From Salpingoeca rosetta (Eukaryota; Protista; Choanoflagellata), in assembly GCA_033442325.1 (NCBI GenBank), contig JAWQFM010000012.1, forward strand, positions 1,597,793-1,661,792: 64,000 nt of DNA, given 5' to 3'. This document shows, one piece after another, positions 41,455 to 49,185 of the stretch. Numbering within the stretch: the first letter of the stretch is position 1; each line of letters begins with the position of its first letter. The notes under the pieces were generated by a model. The model was not told where the DNA came from, searched no databases, and was given only the letters and a program-made list of their open reading frames with translations. The translations under genes were made by a program, and so were the position numbers.

Positions 41455-42606
41455 AGAACATCGTCGACCCTGACAGGTCCCAATGCGCGTCTGTCTGTCT
41501 CTGTGTTTGTGTCTATCTGTCTGTCTGTGTGCGTGCGTGTGTGAATGCACACCTCTACATGTGTGTGTGTGTGTGTTTCGTTGCCTGTTTGTTGTTGGAT
41601 GCACCATCCCAGGTGCGCCATCCACATTCTCCTCCAACCCCCAGCTCCAACATCAACAACAACAACCCACCCCTCCAACAACAAAACAAAACGAACCCCA
41701 ACAATTAAAACCATCGTTCCCGATTCGATGCCGCAATAAGCAGCTGTGGGTGCACTTCCAAAAAAGAAGAAGAAGAACCTCTGCTGCTGTTTTGCTTGCT
41801 TGCGTTTCTCTGTTTTTGTTGTTTTTGTCAAGTCGTCGCCGTCGCCGCGTCGTGCCACCTTCTGTCCCCCAGCACTTGCGCCTGGCACGCTTCCCTCCAC
41901 CAAACCCACCTTTGCCTTTTCGCACCCACTCTCACCCATTCCACAACAACAAAGGACACAAGCCAGCACAGACAGTGCAGCAGACGCGCCGCAAACACTG
42001 TCCATGCTGCTGCTGGTGCCTTGTGCTCGTCCTTGAGTGAAGCGCCAGCAGCGACAACACCCTTCCTTCTGTTGTTTCGTTCATTTCTTCCGCTTTCTGT
42101 GTTTTTGTTTCCCGCGCAAGTCGCATCCAATCAAAAGGTGAGCGTGACCAAAACGAGCGATGGGGGGGGGGGGGGGGGGGGGGGGGGGAGAAAAATTTTG
42201 GGGCCCAACCCCCCCAGGGGGGGGGGGTTTTTTTTTTTTTTATGGGTGGGGGTTGGCCCCCCCCTTGCCCCCCAAAAAACCCGGGGAAAAAAATTGGAAA
42301 AGGAGCCCAAAGCGGGGGCGGTTTTTTTTTTTGTGTTGTTGTATTGCGGCAGTTGTTGGGGCCCACGTTGTTGTATTGTGGCAGTTGTTGTATTGTTCTT
42401 GGTTGCGGTGCTCACGCCCATGGTGCGCAACTCTTCCCTCCGCCCTTCCTTCCACCTTCGTCCCCCAACAGTTGCGCGTGCTGGTTGACAGCTGGGCCCG
42501 TGCTTGGGGCTGAGAGCCAACCTCTCCCCCCCCCCGCCCCTCTTCCCTTCGTTTCATTCAACCACCCACTCACTCCCCAACCCATCGCCACACTCAGACA
42601 AGCAGC

Positions 42607-43223
42607 ATGGAAGAGGGTGATCGACAGCCGGCACAGGGCGGGGCAGACCCTGCCTGGGCAAGTCGCATTCGCGAGGCACAAGCAGGTACGTGCAAGCGCG
42701 AACCCGCCTTGTTGCACTGCCATCCATTGTGTGTGCAGACATAAAGGTGCGCCCTCATCGACTCCAACCCATACACAATGCACCCTCTCTCGCAGTCTTG
42801 TCTCGGCACCTTCCACACAGATCAAGCAAGGAAGAACTCGTCCAACGCAACATCCTCAAAGGTCTGCTTGCCAGTTTGTTCGCGCCTGTGTTTTGCGCAT
42901 GCGTGCGTCTGTGTGTGTGTGTGTGTGTCTGTCTGTCTGTGCGTGTCGTGTATGTTTCTGGAGCTACCAAGGCGATCCAACTCCTCTGCTTCATCTGGGT
43001 GCTCACTAAATGCACGTGGTGAACTTGATCCCGTGATGTACTCAAACAGGCTTTGGCACTGCACACAATTGCATGCCATGCAAGGCCAACTGCAACGAGC
43101 AAAGGTGAGGTTGCTGTCGANNNNNNNNNNNNNNNNNNNNNNNNNNNNNNNNNNNNNNNNNNNNNNNNNNNNNNNNNNNNNNNNNNNNNNNNNNNNNNNN
43201 NNNNNNNNNNNNNNNNNNNNCTC

Positions 43224-43272
<49 letters not shown>

Positions 43273-46053
43273 TGACTGTGTGTGTGTGTGTCTGTGTCCA
43301 CGTGTTGTCGTACGGCATCTCTACTCTATGGTTCCAAATTGTCCGCCGCTCATGCCCATCGCCCTAACTTGCGTTTTGTCGCCCATACCCGCCCCCAAAC
43401 CCAGATTGGAGACTCGTTGGAACGAAACCTTGCCAACCGACCCTCCGTCGAACAGCTCCAGAACAACAACATCCTGCGCCGTAAGTGACAACCAGCGAGC
43501 TGTGATGCGTGCTGTTTTGGACTTGTCGACCCAGCGCCCCACCTTCCTGCGAGCTTGCCATCCAAACTATCGCCGTGCTGCAACACTGCACCTGGCGATT
43601 GCTGCGCTGGCAGTTGTTTGATCCTCGCGGCTGTTGTTGGAGTTTTGGTTGTTTTTTTTCTCACAGTGTAGCTGCGGTGGTGATTGTGGTGGTGACACCC
43701 TCGCTCTGGCGTGCATGGGTTACGTAGACACATCTGCGGATCCCCATGTCGCGGAACGCGTGCAGGACATCAACAAGCACCAGCTACAGTCCCGCCTCTC
43801 CTCCCACCTCACCGCCCGCCCGCCTGTCGCAGACCTCGTGCGTTGCTCTCCCTCTCTCTCTCTCTCTCTCTTTCGTGTGCTTGCGCAAGGTCACGTCTGC
43901 AGCTCCCGCAACCCACCACACACAGCAACACACGTTCAAACAAACACACACAACACATACACACTCATACACACACATACACACGACCCCAAACACAAAC
44001 ACAAACACAAACACACACAGCACACTTGCGCTCCGTCCCCTTGTGTTTAACATTTGTTCGTTCACACTCCATGCGTCGGCTAATCCCCTGTCTCGCTCAC
44101 CCACACTCATGCACAGGTCCATCGCAACATCTTGCCTGCGGACAAGGAAGCCGCTGGCCCGCACGGCCACAGCCCGCTGGCATCCTCTGTCATATCATCC
44201 TCCACACACGCCCTGTCCCCAATGCAACAAGACCAACAAGAACAGCAATACCACCACATCGAGGGCCCGGACTTTGATGGCAATGATCTTGGTGGCGATG
44301 GCCGTTTCCCACCAACGCCGCCGCCGCCTCCAGCCACGTCTGCTGCTGCCCCGCCCACGTCCTCTTCATCCTCGTCGTCGTCCGCCTTCGCCAGCAGCCA
44401 ACAGCAGCCCATGCAGGCATCCGCGCCTATCAGCGCACGCGAGGGCAGTGCATTTCAGCCCAAGCAGCCGGTGGCCGGACAGCAGGTACGCTTGACGCCG
44501 CTCAAGGCGCCGGCAACGCTGCCCTCAAACACGCGCGTGGTGCTGGTCCCTCCCGGGCAGCAGTACATCATGGCCAACGTAACCATCGTGGGGGCGCAGC
44601 AGCAACATCAGCAGGCAACCGGCACTTCCCCCATGAGCAGCAGCGGCGGCGCAGGAGTCCCTGAAGCCAATGTGGGCCAACAAGGGATGGTGGCATCGCC
44701 AGCAACTTCCACATCAACGTCCACCACCGCCTCGACGTCCACCTCTGCCTCGGCATCGACGCCCCCCACAGCGCTGGCCACGCCCGTTGGTGATGCCGGC
44801 AGCTCGCAGCTTTCGGGCAAGGACGGCGCGAAGCGGCGGGCAACGGTTGTGCTGCAGCCGCACCACGTGATGCTTGCACCGCAGCCGGCGCCCGTGCCTC
44901 GCGACCCGCAGCACAAGCACATTGTGGACCAGGAGCTGAAGCGGTACGTGCAGGAGAACATCAAGGTTATGCGCAAGCAGTACCCCGACCAGGAGAACGA
45001 GGGCCTGGAGCAGTTTGTGGAGCAGGCGGTCTCGGAGCAAGCGCGCGCCTACCTCAAGGTGACGACGCAGCTCACTGCCGTGCAGAAGAAGGCCACCCTG
45101 CCGCACAGCGACGTGCGCGCGCGCATCAAGGCGCAAGAGCCTGCGCAGGCGCGAGCAGAGGTGCACCAGGAGCTGCAGGCGTTCCAGGCGCGCTCGGCCC
45201 TGCCGCATCGCCAAGTGCGCACGCGCCTCACGGAGCACCGCAAGTCGCAGTCTGCATCGTCCAAGGGCGCGTCGTCGTCGGCGTCGTCATCGTCGTCGTC
45301 GGCGGCGGCGGCAGCGGCCAAGGCGGCGGCAGCCAATAGGCGGCGACGTTCCCGCAAGAAGGGCGACACGCAGCGGGCGAGCCTGCGCAGTGGCAACAGG
45401 AAGGCGATGAAGCGGTTCAAGTACCACGAGTACTTGCCTGTGGACGGCGAGCCCAAGGCAGGGCGCCGGCGCAGCCACTCGTCATCCCCCATCACGTTCC
45501 TGACGTCGCCTGCAACGGACAACTCCAACCCAGCCACCCCTGATGAAGAGATGCGCGCCGTTGGTATCAAGGGCGTGTCCCCTGCAACACACATGGAGTG
45601 CGCCCCAGACACCCCGTGCGTTTCCCACTGTTTGTTTGTTTGTTTGTTTGTTTGTTTGTTTGTTTGTTTGTTTGTTTGTTTGTTTGTTTGTTTGTTTGCG
45701 CAAGTCTCCGTCCTTCACCACCTCTCGTTTGCATGTCTTCCTCACACACACACACACACACGCACACACACACACGCGCGCACGCACGCAAACCACCACC
45801 ACCGCCGCCGCATCAGGGCGAGTGCGACTGCTGCGTCCCCCGATTCCACTGCGCCTGCGCGGGACCGCAGCACGCGCCGCTCCCGCCGCCGTTCCAGTCG
45901 CCGCAGCGCCTCGAGACGGCGTGCAGGATCAGAGGCCACAAGCGCATCGCGCGCAGAGAAGCCGCCAGCGTCCCCGCCACGGTCTTCATCCGTGTCGCAC
46001 CACCACGCGGCAGCAATGCACCAGCAACATCATACGCAGCAACACCAACAAAC

Positions 46054-46092
<39 letters not shown>

Positions 46093-47785
46093 TGTTCAGC
46101 AGCACAGCCGGGCGATGCCGCCACGTGACATCTTCTCGCTCAGCTGGTCGGGCCCGGGCACCATGATGTCACAGGCCGTGCAGATGCAGGCAGCTTCGCC
46201 CATGTCGCCAGAGGATGATTCAGTGTCACCACAGCACCACCAGCACTACCCACATCCCCACCACCGGCAGCACTACCAGCAGCACCAGCAGCACTACCAG
46301 CAGCACCGCCCCGCGTCGTTGCAGCTGCCAGGACAGCCCCACCCTCACCACCGCTCATGCGATGTCACGCCCATGATCCGTTCCCCGCAAGGTGAGCTGG
46401 CGCCGGCGCCGGCGCCTTCCTGGGACATGGGGCAGTCACCAGGTGCAGTGGACAGCGAGATGCATGCGCTGATGATGCGGCACAAGCAGCAGCAAGCCAT
46501 GCTCCAACACCAGCAGATGGCTGAACAGCACATGCTGCAGCAGCGCCGCGTCATGCGGTTCCCTGCTGCTGACCTCCACCAGTCACACCACCAGGCTGCG
46601 CTTCATGGTGTCGCGAGCAGCGGACCACGCGCCGCCCGGCACCAACGCTCGCTGTCGGACGTGAGCGTGTATCCATTCCACGCCCACCACAGCCAGCACC
46701 ACACCCACGCCAACCCGGACACGGAAGCAGCACAGCTTGAGCGACCGCACACAGGCGAGACCTTGAACGTCGACAGTCATGCAGCCGGTGGTGCTGCCCA
46801 CCACCTCCAGCAGCAGCAGCAGCATCAGCATCACCAACCCGATCAGCAGCAGCAACAGCCCTGGGAGTACACACAGCAGCAGCACGACGCCACGCACGTT
46901 GCTGGGTCTCCACCGGATGTGCTGCACTTGCCGCCAAGCGATCAGCTCCTGCAACAGCCGCTCCCTCTGCAGCACCAACCACAACACGAGGCGCAAGCAC
47001 AGCAAGTACCCCTTTTCCACCAGCAGCAGTCGCAACATCTTCATCAACCGCGAGAGCAACCGCAAGAGCAGCAACCGCACCATCAAGAACAACAGCAGCC
47101 ACAACAACAGCAACAGCAGCCACAACAACAGCAGGAAAACCTTACACAGGCCACATCACCGCTGTTTGAGCTGCTGCCTGAGGAGCTGTTTCCGTTTCCG
47201 GACGATCTGGAAGGACTGGCAGACCTCACAGCACCCGACCTCCTCGACCCCTCGCTCATGCTGGACGAGCCCCAGCAGAACAGCGCCCACCAGCACCAGC
47301 AGTCAACTGATGGTGTCGGTGTACAGGCGCACTCCCCAGCCAACCCGGCCAACCCGACGGCATCAGCGGATGTTCGCCAGCAGCAGCAGCAGCAGCAGCC
47401 TGAGCCGCTGTTGTCCCTGCAGCCGCGAGCACACGACCGGAGTGCATCCTGGAGCGGCAACCCGTCATCGTTTGGCATTGACTTGTCCTCTTCTGCACAA
47501 CTTCACCACCAGCAACATCACCACCAGCAACATCAGCCCCAGCAACAGCACCAGCAACAACAGCCTACAACTGTGGATGCGTCCAGCGCCGCCACGTCAG
47601 TTGCCCCGTTGTCTGGCGGCATGTTCTCCATGGATGAGGCGGGCGATTTAGCCACTTCCCCAACTGGCCTTGACGCCCTCATCAGCGACGACCCGCTCAT
47701 CGGTGAGCGCCAGAGTTTGTGTGTGTATGTGTGTGTGCGTGTATGTGTGTGTGTGTGCGTCTATTTGTCTGTTCTGTCTGTCTGT

Positions 47786-47817
<32 letters not shown>

Positions 47818-48015
47818 CCTGTCTGTCTACCTGTTCTGTCTGTCTGTCTATGCTTCTGCATGTCTATGTGTGTGCATGTGTGTAATGTATTGTATCTTGT
47901 ATTCATGAAAAGTTCATGCATGTCTGCCTGGCTCCGTCTTGCTCGGCTCACTGATTGTGTCACTGACAATGTCCTCGTCTTTGCTGCAGGTGACTTTGCT
48001 CTATCGGGCCAATGA
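42607..48015 (+). CDS. Myocardin-related transcription factor-like protein: three RPEL motifs, B1-like SRF-binding motif, Q/H-rich and acidic C-terminus
   Basis: RPEL1 LSRHLPHRSSKEELVQRNIL, RPEL2 LERNLANRPSVEQLQNNNIL, RPEL3 LSSHLTARPPVADL|VHRNILP; KAMKRFKYHEYLP at 45401-45439. One apparent 1-nt error in exon 43050-43104, next to the gap. Confidence 0.82.
43121..43220. other. Assembly gap (100 N)
   Basis: Run of N. Confidence 1.
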
Positions 48016-49185
48016 TGGCAGTGACCCAAGTGCGCCCACAAGAAGCAAGTGTTGTCCGTGCTCCTCCTTCCCCCTGGTCCTGGCAGCTTGCAGTTGCCAG
48101 GGGTTGTGAGGATGCATGTTGTTGTTTTTCTAATCCCATCTGCTATTCCTGTCATACGTTTGCCAACGCGCAACGCTACCACGACTGGGCCCACACAGGT
48201 CGCTGCCTGCGTCCGCTGATAAGTCTCAGAGTTTTAATTGAATCCATTTTCACCTGCTTGTGCCACGTCTGTAAAGTCAGCCTTGTTGTCTTTTTTGGGT
48301 CGAGCGTGGCGCTTATTGCTTTTTCCTGCCCTTGTGTTTGCGGCCATTCCCTTGCTGTTTGTTTTCCCTTTCAGTCCCGTGTTAAACTCTAATTCCTGGA
48401 TGCGTGTGATGTGATGTGACTGCTTTCCTGTCACTTTTTTTTTTCGTTCCTCCCTCTAACTTGCTTTCGTTGCGAACCGACAACGTGTTAACTGGCTTTG
48501 TTGTAGCGGCGGCTGTTTGCGTGCCCCATTGCCCCTATTGCCGCCTGGTTTTGTGTGCTTTTGCTGACATGAATGTGCCGCGCTGTGGTCGTGGCTTCAT
48601 CTCTCTTCCCCTCCCTCTCTCTCACGCGCGCGCTCTCTCCTACGTCCCGCCCATGAATGCATGCGCCCGTTGTGCGCCCATGCTGCCTTTGACGGGGCGT
48701 AGTGTGCCCGCGTGTGACGGAGGGCGTTCCTTGCTACCTTGGACATGAATGCCAGCCCCCTTCTCTCCCTCCCCCTGTCCCCTTCTCTTCCTGTACCTCG
48801 GATGAGTAGACTTTCAACGAGAACGGCAAGATGCAAACACAGCACATGACAACAATGACGGCTTGACGGTGTGGTCACGGACACGGCTCACTGTCTGGTT
48901 GTGGATTGTGTTGAGAGGGGGGGGGGCATTTAATGCTCGAGTACTTGCGTATCTCAGTCGTTCCTGGCCAATGAGTGTAAGCAAACCGAGGCTGGGTGTG
49001 ATGCATGCATGACCCCGCATGCACAAGACAGCGACAGAACAGCAATGCAAAAGTGAACACATCGATCGTGTCACGCAGCAGTGTGTATGTACGATGATTG
49101 GACGAGCGATAACGTGACACCAAGACTGGGATGGGATGACATCTTGCTTGGGTGTGTCATGTCCAGGGCATGGTACAACACACGT

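Follow-up and report, generated by a model that had tools for sequence, protein, structure and literature searches.

The DNA analyzed here is a 64,000-nt stretch (the window) of the choanoflagellate Salpingoeca rosetta, taken from contig JAWQFM010000012.1 of assembly GCA_033442325.1 (positions 1,597,793 to 1,661,792 of the forward strand). It carries a predicted plus-strand gene of eight exons at 42607 to 48015, with a product of about 1,265 amino acids, in which three RPEL motifs near the N terminus are followed by a motif resembling B1, the SRF-docking segment of MRTFs (myocardin-related transcription factors). The gene model was obtained by direct reading of positions 42000 to 48300 together with a phase script, and all of its introns are GT..AG by direct reading and exon arithmetic. 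All database searches with the gene were run exon by exon. Its features, in window coordinates, are as follows.

42607..42685, plus strand: exon 1, model only, with a putative start codon (MEEGDRQPAQ...) and the donor GTACGT
42796..42861, plus strand: exon 2, RPEL1 LSRHLPHRSSKEELVQRNILK, codons from 42798
43050..43104, plus strand: exon 3, spacer 1 LWHCTQLHAMQGQLQRAK in the frame from 43051, one base out of phase with exon 2
43121..43220, no strand: assembly gap (N), wholly within intron 3 (43105 to 43404)
43405..43480, plus strand: exon 4, RPEL2 IGDSLERNLANRPSVEQLQNNNILR
43728..43837, plus strand: exon 5, spacer 2 (H-TSADPHVAERVQDINKHQLQ) and the first half of RPEL3 (SRLSSHLTARPPVADL)
44117..45615, plus strand: exon 6, 499 codons plus 2 nt, with the end of RPEL3, a low-complexity linker, a conserved helical domain, a basic box, and the B1-like motif
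44117..44134, plus strand: the remaining half of RPEL3, VHRNIL, with which exon 6 opens
44903..45244, plus strand: conserved helical middle domain, from a three-species alignment and AlphaFold2 (AF2)
45356..45445, plus strand: basic box and B1-like SRF-docking motif, KKGD...RKAMKRFKYHEYLPVD
45817..47702, plus strand: exon 7, with RS-rich, polyQ, Q/H-rich, and acidic-hydrophobic stretches
47990..48015, plus strand: exon 8, last codons (...GDFALSGQ) and TGA stop

Exon 1 ends in phase 1 and so joins in frame to RPEL1, which begins near residue 28 of the model, so that the RPEL triplet is N-terminal. Measured against the Pfam RPEL gathering cut-off of 23 bits, RPEL1 (42798 to 42860) scores 29.2 bits, or 28 bits in a scan of the organism's own genome, and RPEL2 (43405 to 43479) scores 25.7 bits and is the best match in the window to sponge RPEL2 (z score of 6.3). 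RPEL3, which reads LSSHLTARPPVADL followed by VHRNIL, is split by intron 5 (43838 to 44116) and cannot be scored by exon-wise Pfam; it fits the consensus by eye. A loose RPEL regular expression applied to all six frames of the 64-kb window matched RPEL1 and RPEL2 only, and these are therefore not chance matches. Each of the three motifs retains the invariant Arg, the helix 2 pattern [ED]L..x.IL, and two helix 1 leucines at offsets -7 and -3, the positions of L74 and L78 in MRTF-A, where the LL74/78AA mutation abolishes actin binding (PMC4963197). From these key residues, actin binding by the RPEL array is predicted. The sequence-only reading of this DNA had remarked that RPEL1 lacks the consensus proline, as it does in MRTFs, and the comparison bears this out: RPEL1 has HR-S in place of RP (Pro to Ser), and the equivalent motifs QRRTREEL of mouse MAL and CRADRDDL of sponge MRTF are likewise Pro-less.

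Single RPEL-like exons also occur in other genes of the genome, at L003 1504-1563 (G000:C3:1409565-1409627) and at about position 1560 of L004 (G000:C13:1327958-1328011, minus strand). They read LNKYLRARPKKQELVSKGII, at 20.7 to 22.3 bits, just below the cut-off, and LEQLAQRASVSELIERRIL.

The spacing of the array resembles that of the MRTF family. From Arg to Arg, RPEL2 and RPEL3 are 43 + 89 = 132 nt apart, exactly 44 codons, and RPEL1 and RPEL2 are 43 + 55 + 33 = 131 nt apart as assembled, one base less than 44 codons. In alignments to PDB entries, the RPEL arginines of MAL (PDB 3tpq chain M) fall at 15, 59, and 103, spaced 44 apart, and those of Phactr1 (4b1z chain M) fall at 18, 56, and 94, spaced 38 apart. 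The RPEL2-RPEL3 spacing is thus of the MRTF type, even though each motif taken singly gets a higher score with Phactr1 than with MAL. The claim of three RPEL motifs at 44-residue spacing thus stands for the triplet and for its second interval; for the first interval, the one-nucleotide caveat that accompanied the claim is real. The spacer in exon 5 contains TSADP (43730 to 43744), which may correspond to the MRTF linker TSAEP, as the sequence-only reading proposed. Exon 5 is 61% identical to the homologous exon of one relative (L011, positions 80 to 189), and PDB searches with exon 5, with its two-sequence profile, and with the B1 segment returned no matches.

The B1-like motif, RKAMKRFKYHEYLPVD at 45398 to 45445, lies in exon 6, and its core, FKYHEYLP, ends the basic box about 430 residues after RPEL3. 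The corresponding region of Mkl1 has been printed as KPKVKKLKYHQYIPPD and as the B1 box KKAKELKPKVKKLKYHQYIPPDQKQD (PMC3933235), with LKYHQYI as the SRF-binding core of MRTF (PMC2819691; PMC3933235); sponge B1, KRYKRLRYHEYIPPS, has the core LRYHEYI and shares YHEY with the choanoflagellate motif (PMC9287330 supplement). In an ungapped BLOSUM62 scan with the mouse query, the site scores 50, and the next best of 96,074 six-frame window positions scores 23. It also scores 50 with the sponge B1 query, for which the runner-up in the window reaches 30. The back-translated pattern K-Y-H-x-Y-[ILVMF]-P occurs once in the 55.4-Mb genome, at this gene, and 0 times in the reversed control. The B1 match proposed from the letters alone is thus upheld. 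Only the joining of exons 5 and 6 completes RPEL3, and the latter exon, a single open frame from VHRNIL to past RKAMKRFKYHEYLPVD, also holds B1; this anatomy makes it very unlikely that the RPEL and B1 segments belong to separate transcripts.

The same reading had set the gene apart from Phactr and other RPEL proteins, and that separation is supported by the period of 44 rather than 38, by the N-terminal position of the triplet, and by the presence of a B1-like motif in the exon that contains the end of RPEL3. In Phactr proteins, the RPEL triplet is C-terminal and is followed by a PP1-binding tail, whereas the choanoflagellate triplet is N-terminal and is followed by the B1-like box. Other RPEL carriers, such as fungal RPEL-rhodopsin fusions and the single RPEL exons of this genome, have the same RPxxxEL motif, one to three copies of it on unrelated domains, but no B1 core. 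Since RPEL motifs occur in fungal rhodopsin fusions (bioRxiv 10.64898/2026.05.25.727616), RPEL alone is not diagnostic.

An exhaustive phmmer search with exon 6 among 1.84 billion representatives found just two relatives, both nonanimal: P0001, encoded on two marine metagenome contigs (L009 and L010), and P0002, on a 6.2-kb contig of an AT-rich genome (L011). Both have the same intron within RPEL3. In L011, VHRNIL begins an exon, and the exon upstream of it specifies SSVEPRVAGRMQDINRHQLQTRLASQLTARPHATEL; in L009 and L010, a CAG acceptor is followed at once by VDRNILPNDK at the start of the exon. The B1-like motif takes the forms FKYHEYLP and FTYHEYQP in the relatives, with the basic KKGD...SG lead-in also kept; YHEY is unchanged in the three distant relatives, as are the Pro after it and the [LF] before it. 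Additional searches did not extend this set: a homologous-protein search with the read-through open reading frame (ORF) added nothing, its candidates having probably been swamped by low-complexity words; one with the three-sequence profile found P0001 only; and metagenome scans with the family alignment and with a degenerate exon 5 pattern found no relatives.

In the alignment of the three choanoflagellate-like sequences, the best-conserved block is a middle domain between RPEL3 and B1 (44903 to 45244; equivalents at about 262 to 400 of P0001 and 445 to 560 of P0002). Its invariant columns read D.QHKHIV.QEL.R.V.ENI ... FVE.AV..QA..Y..VT.QL.AVQ...LPH..VR.R, and it contains a duplicated ALPH..VR.R[IL] motif, the second copy of which is ALPHRQVRTRL. 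AF2 models the domain as two long helices, with a predicted local distance difference test (pLDDT) score of 70 to 83 and a predicted template modeling (pTM) score of 0.21, which is low confidence. Pfam, PDB, and ESM Atlas gave no matches to it. We regard the domain as a lineage-specific module or addition that possibly serves dimerization in place of the animal leucine zipper.

The C-terminal half of the protein is Q/H-rich and contains an acidic-hydrophobic stretch, LFELLPEELFPFPDDLEGLADL..., at 47162 to 47272 in exon 7. A polyQ run at 46037 to 46102 lies about 130 residues past B1; glutamine accounts for 20% of the residues that exon 7 as a whole encodes, and the run is hence unspecific. Exon 7 matched no Pfam family at E values up to 10. 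An Arg/Ser-rich stretch at the start of exon 7 (RDRSTRRSRRRSSRRSASRRR, 45860 to 45922) is reminiscent of splicing-factor RS domains, and a weak Pfam SR-25 match (E value of 0.0033, below the cut-off) lies just upstream of it. GT/CA or GTTT/GTCT microsatellites fill nearly every intron of the gene (42862-43049, 43221-43300, 43838-44116, 45616-45816, and 47703-47989), including a CA-rich simple repeat at 43938 to 43986 in intron 5, and the introns of the relative on contig L009 show a similar tendency.

Among known proteins, the nearest in plan are mouse MRTF-A (MAL/MKL1) and the myocardin family, which have the same N-terminal RPEL triplet with a period of 44 (for RPEL1-RPEL2, with the one-base correction) and the same B1 core, [LF][KR]YH[QE]Y[IL]P, followed by Q-rich sequence and an acidic C-terminal part. 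The choanoflagellate gene differs from them in that it has no SAP domain, shows no evident basic nuclear localization signal (NLS) elements within its RPEL domain, and has B1 much further from RPEL3, with the extra helical domain in between. Outside the motifs, no similarity to MRTF-A/myocardin is detectable by HMMER in the exon-wise searches. The closest motif match is the MRTF of the sponge Ephydatia muelleri (PMC9287330), in which B1 reads KRLRYHEYIPP, against KRFKYHEYLPV here, and spacer 1 with RPEL2 reads LLQRAQIADTL...SRA, against QLQRAKIGDSL...NRP here, at the same offset of 44. That protein differs in having a SAP domain (...ELKVSCLKTACKEMRLIVSGKKAELVERLLEH...), a Q box right after B1, no middle domain, and a spacer 2 that is one residue longer as printed.

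The sequence-only reading had suggested looking for an SRF ortholog, for CArG boxes at actin/myosin genes, and for a predicted fold of B1 with the SRF MADS box. The genome does contain one SRF-type MADS gene (76.4 bits, L007; ...GTEVLLVIASPAGSIFTFSTPRLRPLI), along with one MEF2-type gene (73.4 bits, L008). An intron interrupts the SRF-type core, at L007 1683-2005 (G000:C23), after strand beta-II and before helix alpha-II; the ORF of a relative (P0003) stops at the same place. Because of the interruption in the organism's core, the complex was predicted with a 40-residue B1 segment and two copies of a metagenome SRF-type core (P0005:22-112). The outcome was weak support, with a score of 0.38 against 0.15 for the best of three controls, contact agreement of at least 62%, and partner pLDDT of at least 44. 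Of 78 solved complexes, 51 reach the mark applied to such predictions, as do 2 of 108 mismatched pairs; with a score at 0.60 or under, only 5 of the 78 solved complexes reach it, along with all 4 passing mismatches (of 180).

The RPEL and B1 features are real and jointly far beyond chance. We consider that the locus likely encodes a pre-animal, SAP-less member of the MRTF family, or a sister of it, that senses G-actin and docks on an SRF-type factor, and we put the probability of this reading at roughly 0.6. Actin binding, SRF binding, shuttling, and the choice of target genes are functions that we infer from these features. Under such a scheme, plentiful G-actin would load the RPEL array and hold the protein inactive or in the cytoplasm, and actin polymerization would release it. 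The basic box would then drive nuclear entry, the YHEY strand would dock on the organism's single SRF-type MADS factor, and the Q-rich and acidic tail would activate transcription. The step at which import is masked may differ from that in animals, because the basic NLS elements of the animal RPEL domain are not evident and a strong basic cluster adjoins B1 instead.

Several observations weigh against an MRTF-family assignment with an SRF partner. No SAP domain was found by Pfam in exons 6 and 7 (E up to 10) or in any other exon, none of the 15 SAP matches in the genome is on this contig, and none was found in the available parts of the relatives. The exon 6 search returned no animal MRTF among the 1.84 billion representatives, so that homology rests on short motifs and convergence is possible. 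The conserved middle domain is not known in MRTFs and has no counterpart in the sponge protein, and the distance from RPEL3 to B1 is about 430 residues here versus about 140 in sponge. The best PDB match for exons 2 and 4 is Phactr1, above MAL, its single RPEL motifs being very similar. The junction of exons 2 and 3 is one base out of frame, and the 44-residue spacing of RPEL1 and RPEL2 depends on an assumed correction. The B1-SRF fold test was a weak pass obtained with a foreign core. Finally, the consensus CArG box (CCW6GG) is absent from the 1.5 kb upstream of each of six actin genes and from the 64-kb window. CArG sites are rare genome-wide (300 in 55.4 Mb versus 214 in the reversed control), although these counts, taken without gene positions, are not interpretable. 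The proposed G-actin-MRTF-SRF circuit has its SRF-type gene in this genome; its downstream part is so far without support.

Some of these points would also fit a protein that is a true RPEL relative of MRTF but acts as an actin-regulated nuclear factor outside an SRF circuit, its YHEY basic box being an NLS or a dock for another partner, such as the MEF2-type MADS factor or some unrelated protein. The strongly basic stretch around B1, NRRRRSRKKGD...RKAMKR, would suffice as an NLS; helix alpha-II of the organism's SRF reads DRERLQRYLCC, unlike the animal-like GKALIQACL of P0005; and two positions flanking YHEY are changed in the relative with FTYHEYQP. Together with the empty actin gene upstream regions and the weak fold test, this lends the alternative some substance. 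Nevertheless, the invariance of Y-H-E-Y, of the next Pro, and of the preceding [LF] in three distant relatives speaks against it, as does the residue-for-residue coincidence with the mapped SRF-contact core of MRTFs, which a plain NLS would not need. We therefore judge a role outside the SRF circuit to be unlikely.

The absence of a SAP domain, the lack of an animal match for exon 6, and the strongest conservation falling in a middle domain without a sponge counterpart could instead mean that this is a choanoflagellate-specific RPEL protein, with the middle domain as its real core and a B1-like motif acquired by chance, with no MRTF ancestor. RPEL motifs do turn up in unrelated fusions, including the fungal rhodopsins mentioned above. 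Such an origin would have to produce several independent MRTF-specific traits in the right order, namely, the N-terminal triplet, the period of 44, a Pro-less RPEL1, a spacer 1 shared with sponge (...LQRA.I.D.L...), and B1, and it would have to place the only B1 pattern in the genome in this very gene. We consider convergence on this scale quite improbable.

The frame break between exons 2 and 3 bears on the gene model itself. As assembled, the coding sequence is 3797 nt long and would need one more base to be divisible by three: exon 2 ends in phase 1, and exon 3 is sensible only in the frame from 43051 (LWHCTQLHAMQGQLQRAK), which requires phase 2. In that frame, at the fixed 44-residue register, exon 3 matches spacer 1 of sponge MRTF (LSTSPVLYGQTQLLQRAQ) and mouse MRTF-A (LKSPAAFHEQRRSLERAR, PMC4963197) with a z score of 3.6, a value equaled by about 1 in 1,000 window positions (about 1e-3), and its other two frames stay below 0.6. 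The signal comes mostly from the last six residues (QLQRAK), the first twelve being weak (z of 1.2 to 1.7). The N gap begins 16 nt past the exon 3 donor GTGAGG, and the protein junction ...QLQRAK|IGDSLERNLANRP (LQRAK|IGDSL) aligns without gaps to sponge ...LLQRAQ|IADTLKKKLSSRA (LQRAQ|IADTL); from this gapless alignment of the exon 3-exon 4 junction to sponge and mouse MRTF, coding sequence seems not to have been lost at the gap.

Three alternative splicing solutions were considered. Use of the donor at 42874 inserts 12 nt with no change of phase, and a transcript that skips exon 3 is out of frame. With the acceptor at 43084 the frame is kept, but the exon shrinks to 20 nt, its acceptor is AAG, and the spacing falls to 32 residues; this solution is kept as a minor rival. 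Just upstream of the gene, homopolymer runs at 42160 to 42330 (G of about 40, T of about 14, C, and A) have a low-quality assembly look, and single bases near them are less trustworthy.

We favor a one-base assembly error as the cause of the break, because no more than 70 nt separate exon 3 from a contig end beside the N gap, because low-quality runs lie just upstream, because the acceptor at 43049 is CAG, as in 6 of the 7 modeled acceptors of the gene (the seventh is TAG), and because 131 nt falls a single base below the MRTF period. That the break is instead genuine (a pseudogene or a start after RPEL1), or that the model misses a 20-nt microexon at 43085 to 43104 or an exon hidden in the N gap, would accord with the 3797-nt length, with a spacer 1 similarity confined almost entirely to six codons that the microexon would retain, and with a gap length that is only estimated, but we find it very improbable, given that both flanking RPEL motifs are intact and are brought into one frame by a single added base, that the alternative acceptor is AAG, that the junction with exon 4 is gapless against sponge MRTF, and that the downstream exons are kept in the relatives.

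MRTF-SRF is the main route in animals from actin dynamics to contractile and cytoskeletal gene programs. Its history has been followed back to sponges (Colgren and Nichols 2022; PMC9287330), and in that study a choanoflagellate SAP protein served as the root of the MRTF tree (PMC9287330), so that the study evidently recognized no choanoflagellate MRTF. In our full-text literature searches, we came across no paper describing an MRTF or RPEL coactivator from choanoflagellates or any other single-celled holozoan.

We tentatively propose, at slightly less than even odds, that the actin-MRTF-SRF switch predates animals, that choanoflagellates run it with a SAP-less MRTF carrying a helical domain of its own, and that S. 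rosetta uses it to couple the state of the cytoskeleton to gene expression through its single SRF-type factor, possibly on a site other than the classical CArG box. If this is true, the states so coupled could include flagellate-to-amoeboid transitions or transitions in colony contractility. An RPEL sensor joined to an SRF-docking core in a choanoflagellate would shift the origin of the switch to before animals, and it would suggest that SAP was added later or was lost in the choanoflagellate lineage. It would also allow a direct genetic test, in a tractable organism, of how transcription was connected to cytoskeletal sensing at a time before muscles existed.

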